A stretch of DNA of 64,000 nt, from positions 930,001-994,000 of the forward strand of contig OZ218963.1 in assembly GCA_965112735.1 (NCBI GenBank). The letters are read 5' to 3'. The notes under the pieces were generated by a model. It was given only the letters and a program-made list of their open reading frames with translations, did no database searches and was not told the DNA's origin. Positions 7,844-64,000 of this stretch are shown piece after piece. This DNA comes from Phaeosaccion multiseriatum. Its lineage: Eukaryota; Protista; Ochrophyta, other classes. Made by a program: the position numbers and the translations under genes. The stretch's first letter is position 1, and each line of letters starts with the position of its first letter.

Positions 7844-8040
7844 TTCGGGGGTTTTTGTAGCACCCCCTCTTGATGAAGGAACCCCCCCCCCCCCCGGACT
7901 TGTACTGTACATGAACTTATGTTAGAAAAAGGAAGCCCGGGGGAGGCCCGCGGCTTTCAGATATGGGAAGCGCCCTCTGAATGGCTAAATAGACAAAAGG
8001 GATTTATATGTATAAATATATATAAATGGTAACGTATCTA

Positions 8041-9485
8041 TCATGAGTCCATATCCTCCTCTGCGAAAGGGTCAGTGCTTCGTGCAGGAGCCACCAGGAC
8101 ACCGTCGCTCGGCACTCCTGCTGCAGGGATGAAGGTGGGGAAAGGGGGGTCGGAGGGGAACTCGGGTTTGGTTCCATCGTGCACCCACACGAAAGAGCCC
8201 TTGTTTCCGGCAACATGCCCCTTGACAAAGAGCAAGTCTCTCTGAGTGTCGATCTTCATGATCTGAGTGAGTTGAGTCGTTGAGTATGGCGATGCATCGG
8301 ACAGACACAAGGGAGGGAGGCGAGTCAGCACGGCCAAGGGGGGGGGGGTGGAAGGAACGGGGAGACGCAGAGATGGTAAAGCAAGCAAGGAACTAACCCG
8401 CACCTTCAGATTGTAGTTCCAACTCTTGTCACCCCCCATACGCCCGGGCATTTTCTTGCCTTTGAACACCTTGCCTGGGTCCTGATGAATGGAAACACAG
8501 CGACCTTCCCGCGTTAGAGGAGGGGGAGGAGTGGTGGTTTGGTAGCTATCATCCCAGTACACACCTGGCACTGCCCCGTAGACCCTATATGTCTGTGCGT
8601 CTTGCTGTTTCCGTGCGAAGCTCGCTGTCCCTTGAAGCCGTGCCTCTTCATTCCGCCCTGAAAGCCCTTCCCTTTCGTGATACCCTTTTGGTTCATGGAG
8701 AGAGTCCGTCAGCGTGAATGGGAGCTAGAACATGCACCCTTCTTCTCGGCGCAGCCAGTGAGCCTTGTCCACTCACCTGCACATTCACCCTTTGCCCCGC
8801 GAGGAAATGCTGTGCGCGTATTCTGGTTCCCACAGGTAGCAAACCTTCCGGGCTGACGCGGAACTCGCTCAAGATGTTCTTGCAGGGCACACCCGCCCGC
8901 TCATAGAGGCTCACCTGACAAGCGACGCAGCACGGGGGTTGGGAGGTTAGGGCATTTGCTGGAACTGCGCAAGTAAGTCACCCCTGAAGGCATACCTTCG
9001 CATAGGGCATATTCTTTGACTTCGCCAGACCTGCCCCCAGCTGCAAACTGGTGTAGCCGTGCTTGTCCATTGTCTTTTCCCCCACTACATGACATTCCTC
9101 CACCTGCAGAACCGTCACTGCGTGTCGCTCTCCCCAGGAGTCGAAGTAGGGCAGCATGCCAATCTAGTTGGTGAAGGGGACGCGGGGGAGGGGTTGGGGG
9201 CGTTCATTGATCATGAATGTGTCTAGGCGGGTTTGGGCGGGGGGAAACGTGGGATACCTTCAAGGCCAAGGCTCCTGTACGCTTATAGCTCTTGTCCCAT
9301 GGCACGGGAGCCAGTCCTTCTGCGCGTGAGACCTCCTTGTCCTGGTGCTGCTGCTGGGATACTGCGGCAGTGGACATTTCCCTCAGCCCCACACAGCTCT
9401 CTCTACTCCTGCAGACGGCAGAGCTCTCGAGACAAGCCATCGGCAGCCGGCGCCTGCAACCTGCGGCTGCTGCTGCCACCCACAT
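8041..9485 (-). CDS. MRPL3: Mitochondrial ribosomal protein uL3m
   Basis: Arg/Ala-rich presequence; exons give RTGALALK|[31 protein letters not shown]|[37 protein letters not shown]|[26 protein letters not shown]. Confidence 0.93.
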
Positions 9486-20856: not shown

Positions 20857-22079
20857 GCGGCCCCCCGCCCTTCAGTGAGGACGTGCTCCTGAGCCGAGCG
20901 GACCTGGAGAGGCGTAACGAGGACGGCCTGACCACGCTCCTGTACCAGCAAGCCCTGCACAAGAACGAGTGGCGCAACTTCGTAGAGAGGCACGGGCTGC
21001 AGGACGAACAGCTCATTTGGTCCAAGGTGGGTGATGGGTGTCAGGACAGTGGGTGGGTGATGGGTGTCAGGACAGTGGGTGGGTGATGGATGTCAGGACA
21101 GTGGGTGGGTGGTGTCAGGACAGTGGGTGGGTGGTGTCAGGACAGTGGGTGGGTGGTGTCAGGACAGTGGGTGGGTGGGGGGGCTTGGGAAGCAGTTTTA
21201 TACGTACAGTTTGGCTTTGCGTGTCCATCCTGCCCCCTCTCCAGAAAAGATAAGAGCTAATGAAGTCAGCTAATGAAGCCCGCTGTCCCCTCTTTGTTTT
21301 GTGTCCCCACTGCCCCCCCCCCCCCTCCCTTCGCTTGTAGGACCTTGCTGAGGAGACCCGGCGGTGGGCCTCGCTGAGAGCGCAGACGCTGTCTCGCACC
21401 GTGGAGGGCATGATGTACTACGAGGCCGCGCTGAGGCTGCTGGCGCACCTGGAGAAGATCAAGCACGATCAGGTGGAAGACCTCGTCAAGCAGAAGTTCC
21501 AGTACGTCGTGGCGTGCCAGGTGAGAAGGAGAGAGGCAAGGCCGGGGAGGGGGGGGGGGGGCGGGGGAGAACACCAGTACACTGGGGGCGTGGGTGGGGT
21601 ATACTCACTCACTCACTCACTCACTCACTCACTCACTTACTCACTCACTCACTGACTGACTCACTGACATGCTCACTCACCTACTTTGAAACGCCTTCTG
21701 TCTACAATGGTGATGTGTTATGTGTATGACACATGACACAGGTGTACGGCCGCATGAAGAAGAATGGCGACTCCAAAGCCAACGACATCGACGGACTCCT
21801 TGTGCGCTTCCCCAACCTTCGCGTGGCGTACATCGACGAGGTATGTCCTTCTCAAGCCCGTTTTGTGTTTTTGTGTTCATTTACATTGGGGTGTGGCCCT
21901 CCTTCCTTTCCTTCCCCCTTTCGTCCCTCCCGTCTTTTCCCCATCTGGCGACTCATGCCGCCCCCACCCTGGACTTTTGTGTGTGTTTCTGTTTTCTTAG
22001 GTGCGGCAGACACGCGAAGGGCAGACCGAGTTCTTCTCCGTGCTCATCAAGGCCAACCAAGACACCCGCGAGATCGAGG

Positions 22080-22122
<43 letters not shown>

Positions 22123-25057
22123 GGTGTGTGGGTGTTTGTATGGGTGGGTGGGTGGGGCACAATGAAAGACAAGTTTTGGAAGAGGATGTAGCACCTACCT
22201 CAGGCTCAGGAAGGCCCCTACTCCCGCTCTGCTCTCTCTGCTCGTGCTCTCTCTCTCTCTCTTCACAGGTGTACCGCGTCAAGCTGCCCGGCAACCCTGT
22301 CGTGGGAGAGGGAAAGCCCGAGAATCAGAACCACGGTACGTACGTTGTGCTCTGCTCTGCTCTGCTCTGAGTCTGGAATGCCGCTGCTCTCTGCCTCACA
22401 CTGTCTCGTACTCGTTCAAATCACCCCCCCTCCCCTCCCCTCCCCCGCAGCTCTCATCTTCAGCCGCGGGGAGCACGTGCAGGCCATAGACATGAATCAG
22501 GTGAGCGCAGCAGTTGGTGGTGAGCGCAGCAGTTGGTGATATAGTAAGCGTTACCGAACTGACTCAGAAAGGCGCGCTCTCTCTGTATCTCTCTTTCCCC
22601 TCTCTCCCTCTCCCCCCCTCTCACTCTCTCCCTCCCCCTCTCCCTACCCCTCTCCCCCTCTCCCTACCCCTCTCCCCCTCTCCCCCCCTCCCTCTCTCCC
22701 TTCCCCCTCTCCCCCCCTCTCCTCCCTCCCCCTCTCCCCCCCTCTCCTCCCTCCCCCTCTCCCCCCCTCTCCCTCTCTTCCTCCCCCCTCTCCCCCCTCT
22801 CCCTCTCTTCCTCCCCCTTTCCCCCCCTCTCCCTCTCTCCCCCTCTCCCCCCCTCTCCCTCTCTCCCTCCCCCTCTCCCCCCCTCTCTCTCCCTCCCTCC
22901 CCCCTCTCCCCCCCTCTCCCTCTCTCTCCCCCTCTCCCCCCCCTCCCCCCTCCCCCTCCCCCCCTCCCCCTCCCCCTCTCCCCCTCTCCCTCCCCCTCTC
23001 CCTCTCCCCCCCTCTCTCCCTTCCCCCTCTCCCCCCCTCTCCTCCCTCCCCCTCTCCCCCCCTCTCCCTCTCTTCCTCCCCCCTCTCCCCCCTCTCCCCC
23101 CTCTCCCTCTCTTCCTCCCCCTTTCCCCCCCTCTCCCTCTCTCTCTCCCCCTCTCCCCCCCTCTCCCTCTCTCCCTCCCTCCCCCCTCTCCCCCCCTCCC
23201 CCCCTCCCCCTCCCCCTCTCCCCCTCTCCCTCCCCCTCTCCCTCTCCCCCCCTCTCTCCCTTCCCCCTCTCCCCCCCTCTCCTCCCTCCCCCTCTCCCCC
23301 CCTCTCCCTCTCTTCCTCCCCCCTCTCCCCCCTCTCCCTCTCTTCCTCCCCCCTCTCCCCCCTCTCCCTCTCTTCCTCCCCCTTTCCCCCCCTCTCCCTC
23401 TCTCTCTCCCCCTCTCCCCCCCTCTCCCTCTCTCCCTCCCTCCCCCCTCTCCCCCCCTCTCCCTCTCCCTCCCCCCTCTCCCCCCCTCCCCCCCTCCCTC
23501 CCCCTCTCCCCCGCTCCCTCCCCCTCTCCCTCTCTTCCTCCCCCCTCTCCCCCCCCCCCTCTCCCTCTCTCCCTCCCCCTCTCCCTCTCTCCCTCCCCCC
23601 TCTCCGCCCCTCTCCCTCTCTTTCTCCCCCCCTCCCCCTCTCTCCCTCCCTCTCTTCCTCCCCCCTCTCCCCCCCTCTCCCTCTCTCCCTCCCCCATCTC
23701 CCCCCCTCTCCCTCTGAGCAGGACGGCTACTTCGAGGAGGCGCTGAAGATGAGGAACTTGCTGCAGGAGTTCCGCATCGCGCCCAAGAGCCCCCCCGTCA
23801 CCATCGTGGGTTTCCGAGAGCACATCTTCACCGGGGCAGTGAGCTCCCTCGCCAACTACATGGCTCTCCAGGCAAGCAAGCAATGGAAGGGAGCAAGTGC
23901 GCGCGTGAATGTGTCCCCTGTGGGAAGTCGGCGTGTGTTCCGTAACACGCCGTCTCGACCTTCTCATTTTCAAAAACCTTTCTCTTCTCCCTGTTGGTGG
24001 CACCGTCTGCCCCGTCCTCTCCCACCTCCCCCCGCAGGAGCTGTCCTTTGTGACTCTTGGCCAGCGCGTGCTCTCCAGGCCTCTCAGGGTGCGAATGCAC
24101 TACGGCCACCCCGACTTGTTCGACAAGGTACGATCGATCGTACTGGATGGTGCTGGATGGTACTGGATGGCACTGGATGGCATTGGATGGGTTGAAAGGT
24201 GTCAGATGGGACGAGCTTGGTGGGTCGGGGCGGACGCAGCTGGGAGCACTTGAAGTGACGTCAGCTGATGAAACACGTGTGTTATGGGTGCACCTGCCGC
24301 CCGCTGAGTCTCATACCCATACACCTCCAGGTGTTCTTCATGACCCGAGGGGGCATGTCGAAGGCTTCTAAGGGCATTAACTTGTCGGAGGACATCTTTG
24401 CGGGCTACAACAACTGCATCCGAGGGGGGCAGGTGGACATGAAGGAGTACACTCAGGTACAGTTTCAGTTTTCAATTTCAGTGGTTGACCTCGACGGTAT
24501 TGAGGCGTTCGCAGAGCTCTCACAAACGCTCCAACACGTTCGTGGGGCTTAGTGTCCCCTCCTCTCGCGCTTGCATGCACATGGTGATGGTCATGGTATA
24601 TACTCCTCCGCACATTAGAAGGCCACACTCCTAGCTAGCGCACACTCATACTTTGTTGTCTGCAATTTGCTTTTATTTCCTCGTCTCCTCTACACACAAG
24701 GTGGGCAAGGGTCGCGACGTGGGCATGCAGCAGATCTACAAGTTCGAGGCCAAGCTGTCGCAGGGGGCCGCGGAGCAGAGCCTCAGCAGAGACGTGAACC
24801 GCATCGGTAGCAGGCTTGACTTCTTCCGCCTCATGAGCTTCTACTTTGGCGGGCTGGGCTACTACCTGGGCAACTTCCTGACCGTCATCACCATCACTTT
24901 TGTGGTGTACTTTATGCTTGGCCTGGCCGTGTTTCAGTGCGAGAAGATTGGCCAGCGCAAGATCACTCCGGAGGGCAATTTGCAGGCACGTCACGGCAGG
25001 CACCCGTGCGCTTAGGGGGGGAGGGGGTGGCGTTTGCTGAAGGGACGCTGACGATTC

Positions 25058-32096: not shown

Positions 32097-33723
32097 CTAT
32101 TTGTTCGATAGGATGGAAGGTCTACTCTCTCCCGGCATTCTCGCTCGCAGTTCGATTGTTCTCTCCACGTGGTCCAGTGCCATGCGCATCTTTTCAGCGA
32201 GCTTTGTAAGCTTATCCCCGGCGAGTCTGTCCAGTCTCCGGCCTCGCATGAACTGGTTGTCCTCTCGGACCTCCTTCAGCTCGGCGAAGATCCGCTTCCT
32301 GCCTCGCTCCTCCCTGACGAGTGCAATGCTCTGGCGGTAATGGCTGCGACAAGACAGCAGCCAGCCGACGGATGCGGTAAGGAACCGTGCGATGATGGCG
32401 AGAGACCACAGCTGGGCGACGAGCCGAGGTGGGGGCGGAGCGGAGCACCAGGGGGAGGGGGCGGGATTAAAATGTGTACGCGGGATGAGCTTCATTCAGA
32501 GGCCTTTGCGACGGCGGCGAGCGGCAGGTGGAAAGGGCCTACCTACGACCTACCTGCATCTTCGTCCCCAGCCCGGGATCTTCTTCCAGGGCATCAGCGT
32601 ACCATTTCTTGCCTGCATCGGCCCAACCTGCATCAAGGAGAAGAAGGTGGGCTTGCTGAGGCACGAACGAGGGAGGGCACCACCCATGTCACTCACACAC
32701 TCACCATTCTTGTTGGCAATCGCGCTGTCGGCGATGCTGCACGCCTGGGTGGCGATGACATTACACGTGTATATGAGTACCGTGATGCGCAGCTCGTTCT
32801 TGGTGGTGCGTGAATGGCGACGCCATCGGTCCTTGTCCATCTTGGCCTGCAGCAGGTTTGGGGGGTGTGTGGGGGTGGGGGGTTGATTTCGCAACAAAAG
32901 GAATTGAGGAGGAGCTGGGGGAGGCATGACAAGCAACCGTCACACAAACCTGCCAGTACCTGCCAGTAGCTGTCCAGCGCGCCCACGAGGCTGCAGGTGC
33001 CAAACACAAAGGCAAGCTTGCTGAGGAAAGGCGCCTCCACCACGTAGTCAGAATTTGCCACCGACTCGGCTGATTCATTCGTAAGCGCCTGAGCAATGAA
33101 GCAAAACAGGGAGAAACTCTCAATACGAAGCAGATGTAGAGTGTGTTGTTGTTCGTTCCACCACCCGAAAAGGAAGAAAAAATGTGCCTCTGTTCACTTT
33201 GTTTACTACGTACCACCATCAACGTGTAGGCTGCCGCTGCGAAGGCCATCCAATTTGTAATGACATAGAAGGTCATGAGGACTTTCTCCAGTCTGAGCAG
33301 CACCAGCTCCCCCTTTGTAATCCCAAGCTCTGTGGCCAGAGAGTCGTCGCTCTTGGCTTCTTGGGCGTTCGCCCCCCCACGAACCCCACCGCCAGCCTTT
33401 CCGCCCTTCGGCTGGTCCCCTTCAGCTCGGAAGAACTGCCCAGTGGTCGTGCTCTCCACGTACACCAGGTTGGCGTTCGCACGTCCCCCATTTCGGTGGC
33501 GCCCGTCGCTGCCGTGATGGCTCTGTCGCTCGCGCTCAGCCTCGCGATGAGCACCCGCAAACGCTGAGGTGAGTTCGGTGGGCTGGAGGTTGGACAGCCC
33601 AGTCCCATCGCTGAATTTCACATCGAGATAGTGGCACACCTGGTCTGCACGCTGCATGGGGTAGACATCCGACACATCGTCGCTGTCCACCACGAGCTGA
33701 TAGCTGGAGGCCACATTCGCCAT
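32097..33723 (-). CDS. Uncharacterised ~4-TM membrane protein with Cys-rich loop and C-terminal coiled coil
   Basis: ATG at 33723 (MANVASSY...); hydrophobic helices VLMTFYVITNWMAFAAAAYTLM, LAFVFGTCSLVGAL, ITVLIYTCNVIAT, LWSLAIIARFLTASVGWLL joined by GT-AG introns. Confidence 0.62.
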
Positions 33724-33858
33724 CTTTTTACAACGAGCACGGGGGGGGGCATGGTGTAACCGAAAAAACCTCGCCATCCCCCCTCGGGGGATCTTGGAGC
33801 TTGTTTTCACCCATAAAGCGATTGGAGTGCCTTGGGTACAGAGTGGGGCAGAGAGGAG

Positions 33859-36800
33859 ATGCAGCCCTCCGCGCGGGACAGCGCCGGCGCGGCGGAAGGG
33901 GCAGCAGAGGGTGCGTGGAAAGAAGAGGCTGGAGGAGCCGTCGGGGCGAGAGCGGCGAAGCGGGTGGGAGGTCGACAGCGGAAGCGAAGCAGCAAGTACA
34001 AGGAGTTCGCTGCCGAGCAGCAAAATGCGAGGCTCGCGAAGCTCCTCAATGGCGGCGGGGGCGTCGATTGGGAGGACGATGAGCAGCAGGTACAGTATCA
34101 ACAGCAGCCGCGCCGCAGGGCGCCCAGAAGCGATGGCCTCGACGGCGGCGCCGAGCGGCGAGGGCAGCAAGAGGCGCGGGGGGGTGCGCGTGGCAGGGGA
34201 GGGATGGCGCTGCAGGAGGGCAGTGGAAGTTCCTTGAGAGGGGGGCGAGGGAAGAAGGGGGCGAATAGTGCGCAGGGAGGGGGGGCTGGTGGGGCAGGGG
34301 CGCCTCTTTTTCACCAGCAGCATTTCATTCAGCTTCATCAGCAGCAACAGCAGCAACAACAGCAGCAGCAGATCTGGTTGCACGAGTTGGCGAGTAGAAG
34401 AAGAGGGACCATTGTGCTCGCTCGCAATCCACGTAAGGGCCACATTCTGTGGCCGGCGAGAATTTGCTGTGAGGACGAAGTTATTCAGCAGCTCCTCGCA
34501 CAGCAGCAGCAGCGGAAGCACCAGGACGCCGACATTGCGGCGCAGCAGCATGCGCGGGTCTTGGGTGGCTTGTGCCTCGTGTCTTTTTTGGTGGAGAAAG
34601 GGCACCACATCTTGGACTGGGTGAGCTCCGACGACATTTTTGCCTACGTGCCTCCGATGCTGGAGGCGACCGACCATGTTCAGGTCCTCGCTGCTGCTCC
34701 CTCCCCCACGAGTGCCGCAGTTGTCGCTCCAAGTGGCTCGGCGGTGGGTGCTGGTGTGGATGCGGCTGTGATCACGACGGCCTTCGCGAGGTCTCGACAG
34801 CAAAGAGCGCTTACACGATTGCAGCCCGACTTCAAAGCGGCCTGTCTGTGGGCCCAGGGGTTGGAGCACGTAAAAACTGCCATGCAAGAGGCCGTGCGGA
34901 AAGTAGAAAAGAGCAGGAGGGCGGGATTTTCGCACGTTGATGACGACAGCAGGGCGACTGGAGAAGATTTGTTCTTATTTGACCTCGCCATGGGCACCCA
35001 CAAGAGCCGAGTTACTGCCGCAGCGGCTGCTCCCACAGCGGCAACAAAGACAGGGCAGGAGGGCGAGAGGGGCGAGCGTGAAAGTGTCGTCGGAGGCACG
35101 GGTAGGAAGAGGGCTGTTCCTGCCCCACGCGCCAGCTCCGCCAGCTCCACTAGTGCGGTCCCGTCAAGATCCACACACGCGCCTGCAGCTCCCAGCGCTA
35201 CTGAAGATGAGCGTCTTGAGGAACCGTCACAAAAGATTGCGAGGACTGATGAACAAAGAGAGAGGAATCGCCCGGCGACAGAAGTCAGTACTGCCAAGAG
35301 AGACGAGGGGGCAGGGCGCAGCAGGGCTGCTCGGTCCAAGGCCGGTATCCGAGGCCCGTTGCCCAACACATATGGGGCCCCTTTATGTGGAGTTACCGCG
35401 GAGGAGCGAGCAGTCATGCAGGGCTACTTTCGGCATCTCCGCGTCAGGGCCCTTGGGGAGGCGGCTATGTTCCCCTCTTCCTCTACGACGGACTTGTTCA
35501 GATGGGTCAGCAGCGCAGAGCTGGCAGTGCCACTCGAGCCCGAAGCAGCCCCTGTAGCAGCTCCTGCATCAGCACCTGTATCAGCGGCTGCTGGCACGAC
35601 GGGGGGCACGAGCGCAGGGGCTGAAGCTGAGACACTGGGAAGCACATGTCGGCGTGAGCGGCAACTAGTGCCCTTTTATCCTTCGGGGAGCACTCGGACA
35701 GCCCCGCCGTTGTGGAGGAAAGGGCGAAGTAAGCTCCTGTGTAGGAGTCTGCATCCTCCCACTCCGACTGCAGGGAATGTGGCGCGGAGAGAGGGAGGCG
35801 CTGCGCAGGCGCTGCTGACGAGCCTCTCCTCACCAGACACATCGGTACGTCGGACAGAGGCAGAGGACGGGGGGGAGTGTGTGCAAGAGGGTTGCACGAG
35901 GGCGGCCGTATATGGCTTTCAGCTTCCGCGCACATGCGAGGCTCATAGAATGCAAGGAATGGTGCGCTGCATTGGCAAGGAGGAGGACGAAGAGACACAG
36001 CAGACCAGCGCCAGCGCCACGGCTCATCTCGGGCGAGAGGGTGGAGGAGGAGCAAGACCACGACGAGGAGGAGGAGGAGGGGGAGCTAGAGGAGGAGCAG
36101 GCATGGGATTTGTGGTTACTCCGAGTGCAGTCTTGCCACGCAGGGGCTGCGGGACGTGTGCAGCGTGTCTTACAAAGATCGACTGTGGGCGCTGTGAGGT
36201 TTGCGTGGACGGCATCCCTGGCGCAGAGGTGTGCACGCAACGGCGGTGCGGCTGGGCTGCGAAGGCGGGAGGGGCCAGCGGGGTGGACAGCCTGAAGGAG
36301 GGCCGAGCAGCCGGAGACACTTCTTCACTGAGCGATATGAGGTGAGAATGGGGCTGAGTGGGAGCCACTTGGCGCAGGAGGGGCTGCTTTTCGTGCCCAG
36401 CGGATGTACCCTCCAACTCTCTGCGAGCATTTACACTCACCTCCCTATCATCCTACCCTTTCATGTGAACTTTCTTCGAACGACTTTGCGATAACAGGCG
36501 GCCGCGAGGAGCTCTTTGGAAGGGCAGCATGGGGGGATGGTACAGAGCGAAGGCGAAAGGGCCGAAGCAGGGGCCAAGCACGCGAAGGGGGTCGGAGGAG
36601 AGTAGTAGTAGCAGCGATGACAGCGCCACCGACAGTGACTGGGATACAGAAAGTGGTGACAGCGAAGGGGACGAAGAAGGGAGGAATTGCACGTCACCAC
36701 TGGTTTCTAGGAAACGGCAGCGGCCGAAGTGGATGGAGGTGAATGGACCTGGCCGCAAGCAACCGAGTGCGTGGCCCTTCGAGGTGCACAATCTCAATCG

Positions 36801-39800
36801 GAAGGCCTTCCGCTTTCCGAGGGCGGTACTGCAGTGTCCTTGGAGGTGCCCCGACTGCGAAGAGTTTACCGAGGCGTGTGCTTGTGCAGGAGGCTTCTCC
36901 ACATGGTATATCACCCGCACTCCGCAAAAGTCTCGCCAAGGGTCGGAGGGAAGCACGGACAGCAGGAAAATATCGCAGCAGGTTGTTTTTTGTCCGATGG
37001 AGGTGAGCGGGGGCGGAGACGCACATCGCGCTGGCAGAGTCATGAAGTGTCCTTGGTGCGCACGTGGGCTTGGATCCATGATGGGCGTACCGCTTTGGGC
37101 CAAGGAAGCAAGCGACCGCCGCCTCGAGCTTGGGAAATCGGCGACGTCGGAGGGAAGTCTCTCAGCGAGGGGCGGCGACAGTGTCGGAGGTGTGGAAAAG
37201 GGGGGGGGAGTACGCAGAGACTCATTGGCAGATGCTGATGATGAGGAAGGAGGCGATGCTGATGATGATGACAAGGATGAGGAGGCAGAGAGCGGAACCG
37301 GGGATGGCAATGCGGCTTCTGATTCAGACGAGGGCGAAGCGGCGGGAGACGAGAGTTTGTTTAATATCCACTACGGCTCTACGTCGAAGGAGCGCTCTGA
37401 CCGAGCCTGTATGGAAGCGGATAGCGAAGGCTTCAGCGAGGACAGTAGTGACGACGAGGAGAAAGACGAGGAGGACATGGGAGAAGAGGGGGGGCTCGGA
37501 GGGAGTGAGGAAGAAGAGCTGGTGCGGAGCGAGGGGGAGCTTATAGGGAGCGAGGAAGAGGACAGCAGCGACGGTGATTTCCTTTCATTGCAGAGCACCA
37601 AGTATTCCTCTCGAGGACGGGGCAGGTGGGGGCGAGACTTCAGCGGTCCAACGGCGTACAGCACGGCAGTGGATGTGGCACTGAATGCAACGGGAAAAGA
37701 CTCCCTGAGGCTTGACCCCCATGGGCAGCAGCGGCACCCCGCCCTAGGCGAGAGGAATCCTCCCATTCCTTTTAGGGAAGCATACTTTCCCGGGAAGGAC
37801 AGGCTCACGGACCTCGGTAAAAGAATCATCCCCTCCAAGCAGGAGGAGAAACGGCCGCCGGCAGCAGCAATTGTTGGGCCACAGCTTCTGGCTCAGGTTC
37901 GAGAGGAACTGATGGACAAGGTGCAGCCTGGAAGAAGTCCAGGGCAGGAGAATGGTCGCGATGGTGATTTAGACGGGGAGGGGAAGAAAGACGAGCGGTA
38001 TCAGCGGACTCTGTCCAATGGGCGACATCCTGCAGGAGACGCCAAGTTGACGCAGCAGCAGAGTGGGAAAGTTCTCGAAGTGGTGCGCTTTCTTTTCGAG
38101 AATGTCGACTATCTGGTTGGTACACGGCGAAGCAGGGGCGAAGCAGAAGAGGACGATGGTGATTTCCACTTTGAAAACGACTGCGACGTCGAAGACCAAG
38201 AGGAAGGAGGAGGAGGAGGAGGAGGAGGAGGAGGAGGAGGAGGAGGAGGAGGAGGCGGAGAAGGAGAAGACATGGAAGTAGAAGAGGAAGAGGACGAGGA
38301 AGACGAAGAAGTAACTGACGATACCGGTAGCGGCGAGGGGGGGAACGCTGAAGATGCAGCAGAAGGGGAGGAAGGGGGATACCACGGTGAAGAAGTAGGG
38401 CGAACGGACGACAGAGAAAGAAGGCGTGACAATGTTGTTAGTGACGACGCTGAAGGTGACAGTGACCACGTGGTCAGCGTTGGGGAGAATGACGACAGCG
38501 ATGGTGCTTCTCTCTCCGAGCATCAAGAGAAGGATGGGGACAGCGAGAGTGGCAGGGGGAACGGCGTTGGTGATGATGAGAATAGAGACGCTCGAACAGG
38601 GAAGAGGCCAGCTGGGGGAGACAGCGTGCTGGCTGAGGCATGGACGGCAGCCCATGGCGCAGCGGTCGCGGAGGAAGGAGCAGAGGATGAACAAGGCGGG
38701 TCTCGAATGGGATTGCATGTGGCGCGGCACCGGCGCCTCCATTTGGCGGAAAAGCTGCGCGTGCTCTTCTCAGGGCTACCTCAGGACCTTGTGCTTGCAG
38801 GACCGGTCCGAACTGCACAGCAAGCCAACGAGGGGGAGGGCTCATCTCCGAACGCGGCCTCGTCTTCGGGGGCTGGTGTATTTCTTGCTTCCGCTGGGCA
38901 GCGAGTTCAGTACCTGGCTCTCCTGGAGGAAGTGCAGAATGAAGTGGAGGTTTTGCTGAGCAGGCGCTACGATGTGCTGCGGAGGTCGTACCATCGAGAG
39001 GTGGCGAAGAATTTCGCGCGGGTCAATGCCAAGGTGGATGCGTTCTCCAACCAACTGGCGGGTCTAGGCTTGGACGTGGATCTGTTGCAGCAGAGGGCGA
39101 GCACAAAGGCGCTGAGACTGCAGGAGATACACGATATGGTGGAAGAGGTGAGTAGTTTGGGGGTCAGTCAGTCGCTGGGAGAGGCATTGGATCGTGCTTG
39201 CTTATTGTTACTCACCCCCCTTGTCGGGCGATTTCTTACGTGCTGCCCAGGCGAGCTCGGAGCACGTCCCCTCTCTGGGGCGGGCCACTGTGGTGCAGAT
39301 GGAGGTGCTCCTGCGCAGTGAGAAAGCCTATCTCGGACGACTGAGGTGAGCAAACAGGCCATGACGGCTCGCGACGGCTTCTGAGGCACAGTCCTATGCT
39401 CTCCCTGGGTACTCTCCAAATGCGGCCCGATGATTGAATCGTCGACACGTATCTATCTCAACGCGCTCTTTGCTTTGTTTCGTTTCCTGTGTTTCGTCCG
39501 TCCGATGCTTTTCAGAGCGAAAGTGAAGGAGCACCTGTCCAAGATGGCCATCGTGGAGTCCGCTCTGGACTACTGGAAAGAAGAGCGAGCAAAGCAGGAG
39601 AAGCAGGCGATCGCTCGTGATGCGACCTACGGCGGAGAGGCAGGAGGAGGTGAGGGGAGTGTGGATACACCGCCCTTGTCTTCACTTCCCCTGCAGGAGC
39701 TGGAGGCGGTGGTGCAGCAGTGGGGTGTCCTGCGGAGAGAGCTGCGACGGCTTGGTCTCGGAACAAGGGTGGCGGCGTTGGCACCAGGAACAGAGGAAGG

Positions 39801-41322
39801 AGAGGGAGGAAGGAGAGAAAGGAATACGTCAGATCCGCTTAGCATCTTCCTGCTTCTACAGAAGGGGGAGTCTGGTGCGAATAGGCTAGTTTCGCGGGCC
39901 TTGGAGAAAGGAAGTGTTGCCAACGTGACAGTCGTCTACACGCGGGAGAGGAAGGAGAGCAGCGCCGTCGCGGAAATACGGCAGCAGGCGAAGCAAGCGG
40001 AGCCGAAATCGCAATCGTTTAGCGTCCCGGATGACAGGTTGCTGCGTCTGCTGGAGCGAGTGCACACCCGAGAGTACATTGATGGCTTGCGAAGAGGAAG
40101 CCTTCCCCTCCGCGCGGAGAGCTGGAGTTCAGCTACGCAAAGCTGCGAGCATGTGATGGAGGCTGTGGACAGGCTTCTCAGCGGGGAGTGTCGCTCCTGC
40201 TTTGTCGCGTGTGACTCACCTAGCCACAACGCGGGGCCGGGGACCACAGTCGGCGGGTCATCCCTGTTGGTCAAAGGGGAGAGCCCATGTGGATTCGGAT
40301 CAGCCGTGTTCAATGCCGTAGCTCTTGGAGCCAAGTATGCGCTTCGGGGTATGCGCGACAAAGTTGGTCATGGAGAAGGGGGCGCAAGGGTCCAGCAGTG
40401 CGCCGTGCGTCGCGTGGCTGTGGTGGACTTGGACGGCCATCATGGGAATGGAACACAAGAGGCGTTGTGCCGCACCTTTGATCCTGCATTCTTGTATGCA
40501 TCAGTGCATGCCTTCCAGGCAGAAAAAGAAATGTGGGGGCAGGACAGCAGTGGGAGAGGAAGCGCAGATTCAGCAGCACCATCGGATGTGGGAGGAGGAG
40601 GCGGTGGTGGGGGTTTGGAACGCTCGGCAGGAGATGATGATGACTCGAGCTTGCTCTTGAACTCCCACCCTCCGCTCTTCCCCGGCACGGGCGGACCGGA
40701 TGACCGTCCCCACCGACACGTGATAAACGTCGCCATCACCACGAAGATTGCCCCTGAGCAATGGCGAAAGGCGGTACACAAGGTCACGGATGCCCTTGAG
40801 TCCTTCCGACCTGACGTGCTCTTCCTGTCCATGGGCTTTAGTGCTGCGGCAGGCCATCGCTGCGGCTTGGGCAAGCTGACCGCAGAAGACTACGGCTGGG
40901 CCACGGCTCAGCTCGTGCAAGTGGCGGAGGAGCATTGCGGCGGCAGGATCCTGTCTGTGCTGGAGGAAGGCGGCTGCGAGTGCGGCGCGGAGCTTGAGGC
41001 TGGTGAGGAGGGGTGGGCTTTCTGGGGAGAGCAGGTTTCCCAAGCGCAGCATGGGCTCAATGGGGGTGTGCTCGGAGGAGAGGCTGTTGCCCCAGGAGCA
41101 GGAGGAGGCGAGCGAGACCACACGCCTGCGGACGGCGCGGACAAGAGGACAGAGGGGAAGGGACTAACCACGGAACCACTCGGGGGGGGAGCGCAAAGAA
41201 GAAGCGACTGCAATAGGGCGTTGAGGGAGCAGCATCAGCGAGATGGGGAAGGGGGAGCTGAAGAGTCGTGCGCAGCCTGTCTGAGAGCGCACGTGCAGGC
41301 GTTGGCAGGAAGTGCCGAGTAG
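33859..41322 (+). CDS. ~2300-aa chromatin protein: PWWP, EsV-1-7-like Cys/His motif, CXXC zinc finger, acidic region, coiled coil, degenerate class II HDAC domain (4 exons)
   Basis: Exons ~33859-36341, 36498-39147, 39251-39345, 39516-41322 splice in frame. Motifs: VLARNPRKGHILWPARI (PWWP), CVQEGCTRAAVYG..RTCEAH..GMV, RRGCGTCAAC..DCGRCEVC...CTQRRC, VVDLDGHHGNGTQE, LFPGTG, FRPDVLFLSMGF. Confidence 0.8.
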
Positions 41323-41662: not shown

Positions 41663-44600
41663 ATGCCGGCCGGGGCGCGACGCGAGGTGGCCGAGGTGAT
41701 CCATGCCTTTGGGACCTGTCCGGTGGTGCGGCACCATGTGTGCGCGCTCAGCAAGGCAAGGATTGCCTACACCATTGGTGCCCGCGTGGCGCTCACAAGG
41801 GAGGGCGGCAATGCTACGAATCTCATGTTTCTCAGCTCTGCAGCCAAGGTGCAGACAGTAACCTCGCTGGTGGTGGACACAAGGAAGCGGTTTCTGGCCG
41901 TAAGCTATATTGCCTTTGGCAAGCTGGGTCTGTCCTTCACGACCATCCACAGTCTTGCCCAGCCGCGACCGACGCGGGCCAAGACTTTGGTCTATGAGGC
42001 GCCCTCGGCGGAGCACAGCTGTGTGGTGATGAACTCGTGCTTTAGTATCGACAGTGGCACCCTTCTCCTTCAGATGGACAAGCCGGACTACACCATGATT
42101 GGATACGACTGGAAGTCCGGGAGAAAGCTTTTCTCGATCGAGCTGCGTGGAGGGCTCGCGGTGACCAGGTTGGCGTTCAGTCCCCAGGACAATCGAATTA
42201 TGGCAACCTGCGGCAGCGCGGGCCACTTTCTCCTATGGCGCCTCAATGGCGGGGAGGTGCACCTTCTAAAAGGAGGGGGGGTGGACGGCCTTCCCGGGGA
42301 GGATGAGGATTTCACAGACATGATTTGGTTGTCAGGGGATCGAATTGTACTCACTTCGCGGCAGGGACGGGTGTTTCTCATCAGTCCTGCGGAAATGCTG
42401 GAGAGCTGGGACTTGTCCACGGATCTGTCGCTTGTTGGCGGCGGTGAGGGGGGGGCTGAGACCGGCAATGACCTCGGCACCGGAGCCGCTTTGTATGCAG
42501 TGTGTTCCGCAGCTCGCGTCGCGGAGAGGGGGGCTGGATTTATAGTAGGGGGCGCGGGCGGTTATGTCACGGCGTTCGTGCTCCGGAATAGGCGGTATGA
42601 GATTGTCTCGAGAACGCGGCCATGTTCGGATGACATTGTTGAGCTGCAGGAGTTCGGTGAGGACAGAGAGAGTGGAAAGGAAGGTCAGACCCCCGGCCTC
42701 TTGCTTGCTGCGACGGATTGTGGGGATTTGGGGTGTTTGCAGGCCGCGGCACTCTTTCTTCCCTCCGGCGGCAGCAGAGATGCGGCTGGATCGACTCCGC
42801 GCCTGTTGTCGTCTCCGGAAAAACCTCGCGGCTTCCGCCCTGCCTTGGAGGCTTTCCAGTCCTCACTGGGCAATGGAAGCGTGAACAACAGTGGAGACTC
42901 TTCGGTTACTACCCTTCCGACCTCTGCGTCAACTCCGGACGATACCCATCCCCCTGCTTTCTGTCCAATCGTGCGCGGCTTCGGGGTCGTTGGGGAATCT
43001 GTCCGCTGTCTCGCAGGTGAGTTTTGAGGTGGGAGCATGAATGTCCAAGCCTGGGTATCTATCGTAATACGTGGTGGTGGGGTTTTCCCCCAAGCTTGCG
43101 AAAGCGAGTGAACTCTCACCCCCGCTTCTTTTCTCTTTTGCAGTGTGCTCCCGCAGGCGGTTGCTGGCGTGTCTCGTGTACCCCAGACCAGCGGCGACAT
43201 GTTGCAAAGGGAAGGCTGCTGAATGCGCTGGCCGACCATCGCTCAAGCCCCCAGAGCTAAGAATATGGAACTACCGCACCAGGAGCCTCCTTCTGAGGCA
43301 CCCCTTCCTCGATGCGCTGCCCGAGGCGGCCGACAGTGGACCCCAACTCGGCTCTGTAGAAGGGTACGTGGAGGGAGCCTGTCCACAAGCACTCGACTTC
43401 CACCCCTCGGGATACACCTTGGCCGTGGGATTTGAGGGCTTTGTGAGCATTGTCAGTCTTACCAGTGCAGACGGTGCCATCACGACGGATCAAGACGTAA
43501 TCACGAAAGGCATCTTCCGATGCTCGCAGGAGTCGGAGAGCGTCCTGAACCACGACCCAGTGACATCCCTGCGCTTCTCGTCTGGGGGCCACTTGCTGGC
43601 TGTGGCCACAGGCAAGATTGTGCAAATACTCGCCTTGTATTCTGCGGAGAATGGCGGGAAACTTGGGCGTGTACAGAACCTCTCTGGGCACACCAGTTGC
43701 ATTTCCTCTATCCACTGGGCGACGGATGATCAGCGCTTGAGGACCAGCGCCACTTGTGGAGAGGTGTACGAGTGGGAAGTGGGTGGCAACGTGGACCCCA
43801 AGACCATGCGGCAAAGAGAGTTTATCAGCAAGACCACATCCTTCCAAGGAGTCGCGGCAGGGAGCGGCAGAGAGGGGGGAGTTGTGGCTGTGGGAGCTTC
43901 GTCCACCAAGAGAGGTGGTGGGATATCCTCATCCACTGCGTCCGTCCCTTCCCCATCTTCAGTACGTTCAGATAGGCGCTCCGATTCGACATGCACGAGC
44001 ACACCGAAGGCGTTGGAGGTGCCCAGAGTAAGGTCCAAGCTCTTCGTGTTCCCGAAGACCCTCAATGCGTCAGGGGAAGTGTTTTCAGCAGAGCTTCCCA
44101 TTCAGGCTTCACAAGTCGAAGTCACTACTCGGGGAAGTCGCTTTCAAGGAGGTGTCAAGAATCTGCTGCTGATGGGCAGTCGCGAGGGATTGGTACACTT
44201 GTACGATTGGAACTCGGTCATGAGGGCGGCAGACGGTCTGGACAGCTCCTCTTGTGGTACGAAAGTCGCGTCTTCCGTCAACCCTTCCGCTGAGCTGTCT
44301 CTTCACGGCCAGGCCATCACCTCGCTGCGATTGACCGCTGACTGCTCTGCCTTCTTCACGGCCTCTGAGGACGGCTCCATCTTTATGACTTCTCTCTCGC
44401 CTGCCAGGAGTAGTAGCAACAACAGCAGCGATGGACCGGCTGATGAACAAGAGTACACGAGTGGCGAGGGGGGCGAAAGAGAGATGGCCAAGCAGGCGAT
44501 GGAGGAGCGCTTGGTGCTGATAGATGTTGGAGAGATGGAGGTGGTGAGAACGGAGGTCAAGAATGCTGCATCGGCGTTGACGCAGCAGGAGCACAGCTTC

Positions 44601-60691: not shown

Positions 60692-63600
60692 CTCACTCAC
60701 ACACTCACGTACTGGCTGATCCTCACACTCCTCACTCACTCACTCACTCACTCACTCACTCACTCACACACTCACTCACACACTCACTCACAATCACTCA
60801 CTCACTCACACACTCACGTACTGGCTGATCCTCACACTCCTCACTCACTCACTCACTCACTCACTCACTCACTCACTCACTCACACACTCACTCACTCAC
60901 TCACTCACTCACACACTCACGTACTGGCTGATCCTCACACTCCTCACTCACTCACTCACTCACACACTCACTCACTCACTCACTCACTCACTCATCGGCC
61001 CCACCAGGCGAGGTTTCTCCGACTTGTAGGCCCCTCCTGGCTTCTGGCCGCAGGTCAGCGCTGGCTTCTCGGCTTTCGGCCGTAGGCCGCCTATCGTGGC
61101 TTCCGGCTTGTCACCCTTTCCCGCTGGCGACTGGCTTCTGCTGGTCGCAGCCCAGCCCCTGGCTTCTCGGCTTTCGGTCTCAGGCCGCCTCTGGCTTCTG
61201 CTTCTTATCGGGGGCCAGAGAAACCTCGCCTGGGGCCGATCACTCACTCTCACTCACTCCCTCACTCACTTACTCACTCCTTCCCTCACTCACACACACT
61301 CACTCACTCACTCACTCACTCACTCACTCACTCCCCCGCTCCCCAACTCACTCACGCAGTCACTAAGTCAGTAACTCCCTTGCTCACTCACTCACTAAAT
61401 CACTCCCTCGTAGTCATAAGCAACCGATCTAAGTACCATCCTCCACTCACTTACTCACTCACTCACGCACACAATACCCCCCCGCTATCACTTACTCACT
61501 CACTCACCAGCCAGTCACTCACTCACTCATTCACTCCCTCCCTCCCTCCCTGGCTCACTCACTCACTCACTCACTCACTCACTCACTCACCCACTCACTC
61601 ACTCACTCACTCACCCACCCACTCACTCACTCACTCACTCACTCACTCACTCCCTCACTTACTCACTCACTCACTTTCTCAATCACTCACTCACTCGCTC
61701 GCTCACTCTATCCCACACTCACTCACACACTCACTCACTCACGCACTCAATTAATCCCTCACTCACACACTCACTCACTCGCTCACTCCCTCACACACTC
61801 ACTCACTCGCCCAGTAACTCCCTCTCTCACACACTCACTAAATCACTCTCTCATAGTCATAAGCAACCGCTCTAAGTACCGTCCTACACTCACTTACTCA
61901 CTCACTAACCAGTCACTCACTCACACACACACTCACTCACACACTCACTCACTCACTCACTCTCTCACTCACTCACTCACTCCCACCCTCACTCACTCAC
62001 GCATTCACTCACTCACTCACAAACGCACTCACTCACTCACTCACTCACTCACTCACTCACTCACTCACTCACTCACTCACTCACTCACTCACTCACTCAC
62101 TCACTCACTCAGCCCCTCACTCACTCACTCACTCACTCACTCACTCACTCACTCACCCACTCACTCACTCACTCACTCACTCACTCACTCACTCACTCAC
62201 TCACTCAGCCCCTCACTCAATAGCTCAATCCCTCAGGGAAAAGAAGAAAATCAAACACTCCCTCTCTCCCTTCCTCACTCACTCACACACTCACTCACTC
62301 ACTCACACACTCACTCACCCACTCACTCACTTACTCACTCACTAGCTCACTCACTCACTCACTCGCTCGCTCACTCTATCCCACACTCACTTACACATTC
62401 ACTCCCTCCCTCGCTCCCTCACTCACTCCCTCCCTCCCTCCCTCACTCACTCACTCACTCACGCACTCACTCACTCACTCACTCCCTCCCTCACTCGGCC
62501 CCTCACTCATTAGCTCAATACCCACTACTAGTCACTCACTCACTCCCTCACTCACTCCCTCACTCGCTCCCTCCCTCCATCCCCCCTCAATCACACACTC
62601 ACTCACACACTCCCTCCCTCCCTCCCTCACTCACTCACTCACTCACTCACTCACACACTCACTCACTTACTCCCTCACTCAGCCCCTCGCTCACTTTCTC
62701 AATCACTCACTCACTCGCTCACTCACTCTATCCCACACTCACTCACACACTCACTCACTCACGCACTCACTCACACACTCAATTAATCCCTCACTCACAC
62801 ACTCGCTCACTCGCTCACTCCCTCACGCGCTCCCTCACTCCCCCCCCTCTCTCACACACTCACTAAATCACTCCATCATAGTCATACGCAACCGATCTAA
62901 GTACCGTCCTACACTCACTCTTACTCAGCCCCTCACTCACTAGATCAATCACTCACTCATTAGCTCGCTCACTCTCTCCATCCCACACACACTCACACAC
63001 TCACTCACTCACTCCCTCACTCACTAAAATAATCCCTCACTCACTCACTCACTCACTCAGGCACTCACTCACACACTCACTCACTCACTCACTAAGTCAG
63101 TCACTCACGCGCTCGCTCACTCACTCCCTCACTCACTCACTCACTCACTCCCTCACTCACTCACTCACTCACTCACTCACTCACTCACTCACTCACAAAA
63201 AAAAAGAACAATTACTCAGTCACTGGCTCGCTCACACTCTCCATCCCATACACACTCACTTACTCACTCACTCACCCACTCACTCACTCAATTATTCCCT
63301 CACTCACTCACTCACTCACTCACTCACTCACTCAATCACTCACTCACACACTCACTCACCCACTCACCCACTCACTCCGTCACTCCCTTACTCACTCACC
63401 CACTCACTTACTCCCTCCCTTCCTCCCTCCCTCCCTCACTCGATCACTCACTCACTCACTCCCTCCCTCCCTCCCTCACTCACTCACTCACTTACTCACT
63501 CACTCACTCACTCAATCACTCACTCACTCACTAATTCACTCACTCATTCACTCACTCACTCACTCACTCACCCACTCACTCACTCACCCACTCCCTCACT

Positions 63601-64000
63601 CACTCACTCACTCACTCACTCACTCACTCACTCCCTCACTCGGCCCCTCACTCATTAGCTCAATACCCACTACTAGTCACTCACTCACTCCCTCACTCAC
63701 TCCCTCACTCGCTCCCTCCCTCCATCCCCCCTCAATCACACACTCACTCACACACTCCCTCCCTCCCTCACTCACTCACTCACTCACTCACTCACACACT
63801 CACTCACTTACTCCCTCACTCAGCCCCTCGCTCACTTTCTCAATCACTCACTCACTCGCTCGCTCACTCTATCCCACACTCACTCACACACTCACTCACT
63901 CACGCACTCACTCACACACTCAATTAATCCCTCACTCACACACTCGCTCACTCGCTCACTCCCTCACGCGCTCCCTCACTCCCCCCCCTCTCTCACACAC
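60692..64000. repeat. Large degenerate (CACT)n satellite with higher-order duplications, running off the window
   Basis: More than 3 kb of CACT/CCCT units; unique punctuations repeated, e.g. CACGTACTGGCTGATCCTCAC x3 and GCAACCG(A)TCTAAGTACC x3; ~62480-62860 closely matches ~63630-64000. Confidence 0.95.
60996..61238. mobile_element. 243-bp MITE-like non-autonomous DNA transposon
   Basis: Terminal inverted repeats CGGCCCC(ACC)AGGCGAGGTTTCTC ... GAGAAACCTCGCCTGGGGCCG, flanked by AT on both sides, with internal GGCTTCT subrepeats, interrupting a (CACT)n array. Confidence 0.8.

Follow-up and report, generated by a model that had tools for sequence, protein, structure and literature searches.

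The locus described here raises the question whether a histone deacetylase (HDAC) domain stripped of several catalytic residues and a series of candidate chromatin-binding modules encoded upstream of it form a single gene, and what such a gene might do. It lies on the forward strand of a 64,000-nucleotide stretch of DNA from Phaeosaccion multiseriatum (hereafter the window: positions 930001-994000 of contig OZ218963.1, C14 in our numbering, i.e. C14:930001-994000), and the genome searched for its relatives was the 67-Mb, 22-contig assembly. The answer that we favour, with a probability of about 0.6, is that the locus is a four-exon gene encoding a non-catalytic member of a three-gene family of HDAC fusions, which would act without catalysis. 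A reading of the same DNA from its letters alone (hereafter the sequence-only reading) had proposed a giant chromatin reader with PWWP, EsV-1-7 and CXXC domains that ends in a pseudo-HDAC.

Homology searches were run exon by exon (Pfam on the separate exons), and the same profiles were run against the genome translated in six frames. In exon 4 the Hist_deacetyl profile (PF00850) scored 118.9 bits against a cut-off of 27.9; this call and that of the CXXC zinc finger in exon 1 are solid. The AlphaFold 2 (AF2) model of the HDAC domain, built on an alignment of 87 relatives, is confident as a whole (pLDDT 79.8, pTM 0.80), with low confidence in two loops, in a Gly-rich insert and after residue 322. 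Foldseek matched it to the structures of HDAH, HDAC4 and HDAC6 with a probability of 1.0 (TM about 0.6). Among the Foldseek matches are the inactivated mutants H143A/H144A and Y313F, whose altered positions are altered in the window copy too.

The active site was compared by alignment to HDACs of known structure in the Protein Data Bank (PDB) and by alignment of the 87 relatives (HMMER, MAFFT), and both comparisons confirmed the substitutions noticed earlier. RPPGHHA is replaced by DSPSHNA (His237/Asn238 at 40225-40230), GFC by GSA (40297-40305), which removes the tunnel Phe, and GFDA by GFSA, with Ser442 (40840-40842) in place of the third Zn ligand. The EGGY motif is represented by EEGGC, which contains no Tyr; HMMER places Cys487 (40975-40977) at the position of the Tyr and MAFFT places Gly486 there. 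In addition, the rim Asp-Thr that binds substrate has become Ser-Leu, and GFDAHxxD has lost both its His and its second Asp. The DxDxHHGNG motif is retained as DLDGHHGNG (40426-40452), again in agreement with the sequence-only reading, and the Zn ligands Asp306 and His308 are present, as is the first His, His237. The second catalytic His, which is Asn in the window copy, is found in 133 of the 135 relatives listed that align at this column; the Asp that serves as the third Zn ligand, Ser in the window copy, is found in 153 of the 157 proteins listed; and no relative listed exhibits the substitution pattern of the window copy. Each such active-site change alone cripples HDACs, and the Tyr-to-His replacement alone turns class IIa HDACs into very poor enzymes. 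Judging from these alignments, a domain from which the general-base His, a Zn ligand, the Tyr and the substrate-binding Asp have been lost is very probably unable to carry out canonical deacetylation.

By sequence comparison the window gene is not an orphan: it is one of three HDAC-fusion genes of an apparently undescribed ochrophyte family. One paralogue (locus C4:5583744-5592620) was found via the only other CXXC domain of the genome; 6 kb downstream of this domain lies the HDAC that most closely resembles the one of the window gene. A tblastn search of the window exons against C4:5578001-5596000 reported collinear matches, all on one strand, to the PWWP-like exon (E-value 5e-5), the Cys-rich segment (residues 94-184 of exon 2, E-value 7e-12), the CXXC domain, the HDAC domain (E-value 2e-41) and the C-terminal helix. 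The C4 HDAC has intact RPPGHHAG, GFC, DFDVHHGNG, GFDAH and EGGY motifs, and the C4 CXXC is of the canonical KFGG-like type. An AP2 domain was looked for at the C4 locus and not detected. At the other paralogous locus (C9:1928946-1936173) the Cys module is followed after ~5.7 kb by an HDAC encoded in three exons, which is intact and carries the C-terminal motif of the family, and no PWWP-like or CXXC motif was found within the 18 kb examined. The two paralogues resemble the window gene in having, on one strand, an 8-Cys module, a long low-complexity linker, a class-II-type HDAC and a C-terminal helix, but they differ in keeping the complete set of RPPGHHA, GFC, DFDxHHG, GFDxH and EGGY motifs.

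The 8-Cys module is apparently a previously undescribed, putative zinc-binding domain. Eight Cys residues and one His are invariant across the window, C4 and C9 copies and a fourth copy in P0166, a partial protein of the brown alga Choristocarpus tenellus. When the genome was searched with a profile of the module, exactly three loci matched (on C14, on C4 and at C9:1928946-1929101), each upstream of an HDAC, which is encoded on the same strand at a distance of 4-6.5 kb. No match to the module was found in Pfam, in the PDB (by profile) or in the ESM Atlas, and a word search with the Cys-module region of exon 2 retrieved no orthologue. P0166 contains a CXXC domain, an acidic stretch and the 8-Cys module, in the order predicted across exons 1 and 2 of the window gene; it differs in that its CXXC is of the canonical KYGG...RQ type, and its Cys module is 38-40% identical to both the window and the C4 copies. 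No HDAC was found on the 11-kb contig that encodes P0166. The order of these modules is not constant: at the C4 locus the Cys module precedes the canonical CXXC (L019:7058-8365), whereas in the window (36136-37110) and in P0166 the CXXC, which in the window gene is degenerate, precedes the Cys module. This mismatch suggests a rearrangement in one of the paralogues.

The best-scoring relatives of the HDAC domain are catalytically intact, and where their source is named it is a diatom, namely Entomoneis, Attheya or Odontella (UniRef A0A7S4IKF4, "histone deacetylase"). BLAST searches of exons 1-3 against the HDAC relatives reported no matches, and the module common to these proteins surfaced only in a motif scan, which identified, in 12 long diatom-type HDAC relatives, a [FLWM]WPAR module that precedes the HDAC domain by 450-950 aa and aligns with the PWWP-like segment of the window gene. 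In every long relative checked in the HDAC clade, a single protein combines the PWWP-like module with the HDAC. The ochrophyte proteins from Entomoneis, Attheya and Odontella share with the window gene the N-terminal [FLWM]WPAR motif and the C-terminal HDAC of the same clade; they differ in being catalytically intact and in lacking the CXXC and the Cys module according to the motif scan, and Pfam reported only the HDAC domain in the 8 that were scanned.

The nearest row to the window HDAC domain in these comparisons is the C4 paralogue, with up to 42% identity. A maximum-likelihood tree grouped the window domain, the C4 paralogue and the PWWP-like HDACs in a clade with support of 99/97. The end branch of the window domain corresponds to 1.6 changes per column, compared to 0.51 for the C4 paralogue and a tree median of 0.46, and in the unconstrained tree the window domain is basal in the clade. 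Forcing the window and C4 domains to be sisters costs 0.16 log-likelihood units (p-AU 0.38, not rejected); the data thus allow a duplication within the lineage of this alga with subsequent acceleration, and this is possibly how the window copy originated.

The sequence-only reading had also stated that this combination of domains could not be recognised from any described protein. As far as publications are concerned this stands: full-text literature searches turned up no account of an EsV-1-7/HDAC protein, a diatom PWWP-HDAC or an Ectocarpus CXXC-HDAC, and a broad survey of chromatin gene evolution reports variable reader-domain architectures in general and does not mention this fusion. As a statement of uniqueness it has to be qualified, with fusions to an active HDAC occurring twice more in the genome and parts of the combination in a brown alga and in diatoms. 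The two intact paralogues, the 8-Cys module, the brown-alga protein with CXXC and Cys modules and the diatom PWWP-like HDACs are new in this analysis.

We consider it quite likely that the HDAC exon and the upstream modules belong to one gene (Table 1), because the arrangement is collinear at three independent loci (C14, C4 and C9), because a PWWP-like module accompanies the HDAC clade-wide, including diatom sequences derived from transcriptomes, because the brown-alga protein joins the CXXC to the Cys module, and because the splice signals are strong and in phase. The ORF listing reports + strand ORFs at 33832-36345, 36529-39321 and 39430-41322, with a chance of each being open, estimated from the local base composition, of 1e-10 to 1e-16. 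The earlier claim that canonical introns connect these three ORFs and a 95-bp exon in one frame proved correct as to the ORFs, the reading frame, which is kept throughout, and the introns, all three of which are predicted to be of the GTGAG...AG form. The other HDAC genes of the genome, in which introns were located from gaps in the Pfam coordinates, have GTGAG/GTAAG...CAG introns of similar lengths. The joined model has 4 exons and about 2,345 codons and would be expressed as a single transcript; its least secure parts are exon 3 and the start codon. The GC content by codon position did not clearly set the exons apart from the introns, Pfam reported no match for exon 2, and a tblastn search of the exons against the C4 paralogue region found no homology support for exon 3. 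Four sequencing runs, all from one sample, contain the locus; all consist of genomic contigs that include the introns and are identical to the window. Two apparent joints in these runs (36084-40591 and 36085-38358) were considered as splices and rejected, their sides being matches of 18-22 nt in GAG-type repeats.

Table 1. Features of the HDAC-fusion gene and copies of its 8-Cys module (positions refer to the window unless another sequence is named)
Feature	Position	Strand	Evidence and remarks
Exon 1	33859-36341	+	From ORF 33832-36345; coding sequence taken from the first ATG of the ORF (predicted start); GTGAGA donor after 36341
Intron 1 (predicted)	36342-36497	+	156 nt, GTGAGA...AACAG; fits the intron consensus of the genome
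Exon 2	36498-39147	+	Cys-rich module, ~560 aa rich in Gly/Glu/Asp, helical stretch; ORF and composition
Intron 2 (predicted)	39148-39250	+	103 nt, GTGAGT...CCCAG
Exon 3 (predicted)	39251-39345	+	95 bp; required for the frame between exons 2 and 4
Intron 3 (predicted)	39346-39515	+	170 nt, GTGAGC...TTTTCAG, pyrimidine tract
Exon 4	39516-41322	+	Stop codon included; from ORF 39430-41322
PWWP-like module (...KGHILWPARI...)	34405-34650	+	Pfam PWWP 23.4 bits; 26.9 bits six-frame
Single EsV-1-7 cysteine-rich motif (C-x4-C-x13-C-x2-H)	35878-35964	+	PF19114 21.5 bits; 26.7 bits six-frame
CXXC zinc finger, divergent CpG-contact loop	36136-36249	+	Pfam 29.2 bits; 28.7 bits six-frame
8-Cys zinc-type module, putative (H-x15-C-x3-C-x2-C-x6-C-x-C ... 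C ... C-x2-C)	36763-37110	+	Paralogue and brown-alga matches
8-Cys module, C4 copy	L019:7052-7414
8-Cys module, C9 copy	L022 ~7946-8100 (C9:1928946-1929101)
8-Cys module, Choristocarpus tenellus copy	P0166 residues 205-310
HDAC (arginase/deacetylase-fold) domain, degenerate active site	40045-40977	+	Pfam, PDB alignments, alignment of 87 relatives, AF2, Foldseek
C-terminal helix motif (C-x-x-A-H-V-x-A-L type)	41260-41319	+	tblastn; common to the active paralogues and relative P0019

The rival explanation that survives best, although we regard it as rather unlikely, is that the locus comprises two or three separate genes, i.e. a PWWP/EsV-1-7/CXXC protein, with or without the ORF coding for the Cys module and the acidic region, and a stand-alone degenerate HDAC, the in-frame splicing being coincidental. 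It would agree with the presence of ATG codons at 36529 and 39430, with the genomic nature of all the runs that contain the locus, with the unsupported exon 3 and with the tight packing of genes in this region: the next gene downstream begins only ~340 nt past the stop codon of the HDAC gene, and for this reason the short gaps between the ORFs are themselves weak evidence for one gene. Nonetheless, separate genes would leave to chance the repetition of the collinear arrangement at two other loci, the residence of the PWWP-like module and the HDAC in one protein in the long relatives of the clade, the union of the CXXC and Cys modules in the brown-alga protein, and the position of the in-frame TGA that closes ORF 1, which falls within the consensus donor site of intron 1.

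A second alternative, which we judge improbable, is that neutral decay is under way in a duplicated gene, or at least in its HDAC part, and that the changes of the active site are an early stage of degeneration. The long end branch would be expected of such a duplicate, and the contact loop of the CXXC is indeed degenerate relative to that of the C4 paralogue. The sequence-only reading had suggested a search for orthologues with the same substitutions, and this search turned up none: a full HMMER search of 1.84 billion representatives had as its best hit an intact protein (114 bits, 43% identity), and two scans of metagenome contigs and a word search with exon 4 were blank or retrieved intact relatives only. 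Against decay, the losses are not spread over the domain at random. With conserved columns defined as those at least 85% identical across the 87 relatives, the window copy keeps 26 of the 27 located outside the catalytic motifs and 11 of the 26 located inside them (Fisher p = 1.5e-5), where the motif windows are the textbook HDAC motifs, set after the changes were known. Moreover, ~2,300 codons are free of stops and frameshifts despite the divergence, all the metal-ligand Cys residues of the CXXC and of the Cys module are kept, the C-terminal motif of the family is retained and the model of the fold is confident. Neutral drift is unlikely because an ORF so diverged could not have remained free of stops and frameshifts, and the retention of the columns that define the fold together with the loss of the catalytic ones is the pattern of a maintained pseudoenzyme and not of decay. 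We infer that the window copy is most likely such a pseudoenzyme, maintained by selection.

Loss of catalytic residues was observed elsewhere in the wider group as well. Among the HDAC relatives from metagenomes and transcriptomes, P0095, P0125, P0127, P0147 and P0150 have also lost the His or the Asp that binds Zn; in the tree, P0095 is sister to P0125. It seems that pseudo-HDACs arose several times in this group.

A third explanation, already contained in the sequence-only reading and in our opinion also hard to credit, holds that the protein is an acyl-lysine reader that integrates H3K36 methylation, via the PWWP domain, with unmethylated CpG, via the CXXC domain. The types of domains required are present, two of the Zn ligands and the first His remain in the pocket, and the class IIa HDACs, with Tyr replaced by His, are held to be weak enzymes or acetyl-lysine binders. 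The role of a reader is doubtful, however, because the residues of the pocket are themselves altered: Phe, Tyr, one Zn ligand and the rim Asp are missing. The other half of the proposal, coupling of the states of histone and DNA methylation, is unsupported because the PWWP call is borderline, with a first cage position that looks non-aromatic, because the CpG-contact motifs of the CXXC are lost, and because the genome has a single C5 DNA-methyltransferase match.

The evidence for the N-terminal modules is uneven, and of the three domain types named by the sequence-only reading only the CXXC lies above its cut-off, with PWWP and EsV-1-7 straddling theirs. The zf-CXXC profile (PF02008) scored 29.2 bits against a cut-off of 26.5 (28.7 bits in the six-frame search of the genome), and all eight Cys residues align with those in the CXXC structures of MBD1, TET3, CXXC5 and TET1. 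The loop that corresponds to the CpG-contact region reads DGIPGAEV and contains neither the KFGG...Q nor the TGHQ contact motif. The genome contains two CXXC matches, that of the window gene and that of the C4 locus (C4:5585706-5585834, 47.5 bits), and a single match to the C5 DNA-methyltransferase profile (PF00145; C3:5535870-5536184, 40.6 bits). The CpG observed/expected ratio in the window is 0.70 (GpC 0.96), a value that is indecisive with respect to a link to DNA methylation. The PWWP profile (PF00855) scored 23.4 bits in hmmscan and 26.9 bits in the six-frame search, on either side of the cut-off of 25.6. The predicted structure of this segment is weak (pLDDT 58.6); Foldseek found no significant match for the model, with PWWP, Tudor and chromo domains making up most of the weak list, and neither sequence nor profile searches found a match in the PDB. 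The first position of the aromatic cage looks like His instead of Tyr or Phe, according to a reading of the motif that is unconfirmed by alignment to solved PWWP structures. The EsV-1-7 call is likewise borderline (EsV_1_7_cys, PF19114: 21.5 bits on the exon and 26.7 bits six-frame, cut-off 25), with the C-x4-C...C-x2-H pattern present. Most members of the EsV-1-7 family carry repeats of the motif, and the window gene carries one copy. The six-frame search of the genome detected no EsV-1-7 motif at the C4 or C9 loci, and among the three HDAC-fusion copies the motif has thus been gained only by the dead one. The genome has at least 67 EsV-1-7 matches, a number that fits the expansion reported for brown algae and sister taxa (10.1101/2024.02.19.579948).

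That the window copy has kept an enzymatic function by means of a rewired centre, for instance with Cys487 or Ser442 engaged in metal binding or catalysis on some other amide substrate, is very improbable: Asp306, His308 and His237 are kept, the Cys adjoins the former position of the Tyr, HDAC-fold enzymes hydrolyse varied amides and propanil and dimethoate hydrolases are among the fold matches, but several independent catalytic elements have been lost together, the pattern occurs in none of the relatives listed, and the model is of low confidence after residue 322.

Several points weigh against the view of the locus as one gene for a maintained, non-catalytic protein. The gene model is a prediction as regards its splice junctions, its third exon and its start codon, and the close downstream neighbour shows that small distances mean little here. 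To these are added the borderline PWWP call, the CXXC loop devoid of contact motifs, the choice of the motif windows after the fact, and the failure of both the full HMMER search and the metagenome and word searches to retrieve an orthologue with the same substitutions. The mode of action proposed below is drawn by analogy.

The sequence features, the fold, the paralogy and the confinement of the losses to the catalytic motifs are established by the comparisons above. They indicate that the host, a stramenopile alga related to brown algae, has a family of proteins in which a class-II-type HDAC is probably fused to N-terminal PWWP-like, CXXC and 8-Cys modules, and that the window copy originated by duplication and evolved about three times faster. 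Its active site no longer has the general-base His, the third of the Zn ligands, the transition-state Tyr, the Asp that binds substrate or the Phe of the tunnel; the copy has gained the EsV-1-7 motif, and has kept nearly all fold-determining residues, the C-terminal helix and the metal ligands of the zinc modules. As to its mode of action we speculate that the protein could be held on chromatin by its N-terminal modules and its long acidic linker, and the dead HDAC domain could serve as a protein-interaction or occupancy surface, the protein itself removing no acetyl groups. It might compete with the active paralogues for common sites or partners and in this way protect acetylation, or it might tether partners, as class IIa HDACs do. 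A more specific proposal, which we regard as doubtful, is that of an enzyme/anti-enzyme pair, in which the dead copy, brought to chromatin by its own PWWP-like, EsV-1-7, CXXC and Cys modules, would shield acetylated nucleosomes from the two active paralogues or would be their obligatory regulatory partner; if this were true, the dead copy would amount to a genetically encoded competitive inhibitor or partner.

The closest parallels are found among the HDACs with impaired centres. In class IIa HDACs the catalytic Tyr is replaced by His, and these weak enzymes are regarded mainly as scaffolds or acetyl-lysine binders. The vertebrate members (HDAC4/5/7/9) resemble the window copy in combining an HDAC fold with an impaired centre, and structures of HDAC4 rank, by sequence as well as by fold, with the best matches of the window domain. 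However, class IIa HDACs keep both His residues, the three Zn ligands and weak activity, whereas the window copy has also lost the second His, a Zn ligand, the rim Asp and the tunnel Phe, and their N-terminal regions are unrelated to those of the window gene. The C-terminal pseudo-deacetylase domain of HDAC10 has the HDAC fold without catalytic residues and is kept as a structural partner. There the dead domain shares a chain with an active one, whereas here the active and dead domains reside on separate paralogous genes.

HDACs of animals, fungi and plants are usually recruited to chromatin by partner proteins, and in the lineage of brown algae and diatoms candidate targeting modules appear to be fused straight onto the HDAC. 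On the doubtful enzyme/anti-enzyme reading, the family, including its 8-Cys module, would represent lineage-specific address labels for HDACs that replace the reliance on co-repressor complexes. One genome that contains active versions and a version in which the active site alone has been dismantled provides a natural pair to probe the non-catalytic role of the deacetylase fold. The family also offers a handle on an undescribed zinc-type module and adds to the little-studied chromatin regulation in a group with independently evolved multicellularity.

The remaining observations concern the linker and the surroundings of the gene. A GAG/GAGGAAGAGGAG trinucleotide array at 38200-38303 encodes the poly-Glu/Gly part of the linker; in each of the four runs the contigs are interrupted at 38177-38315, and therefore the length of the repeat may be uncertain there. 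The downstream neighbour, an ORF at 41663-43027 (+), codes for a beta-propeller of the EML/WDR36-like type according to weak Pfam matches. On the other side, a 724-aa ORF at 32761-34935 (-) covers the strand opposite to the first kilobase of exon 1 and reaches 1.1 kb upstream of this exon. Neither this ORF nor the upstream + strand ORF at 33184-33567 had a Pfam match; the upstream part of the antisense ORF could be a small divergent gene; alternatively, an antisense shadow could account for the ORF in its entirety. Finally, two regions of the window, 22001-24000 and 61001-64000, exhibit an extreme GC skew (-0.45 to -0.9) together with a strong AT skew, and thus appear to be strand-biased simple or satellite sequence.

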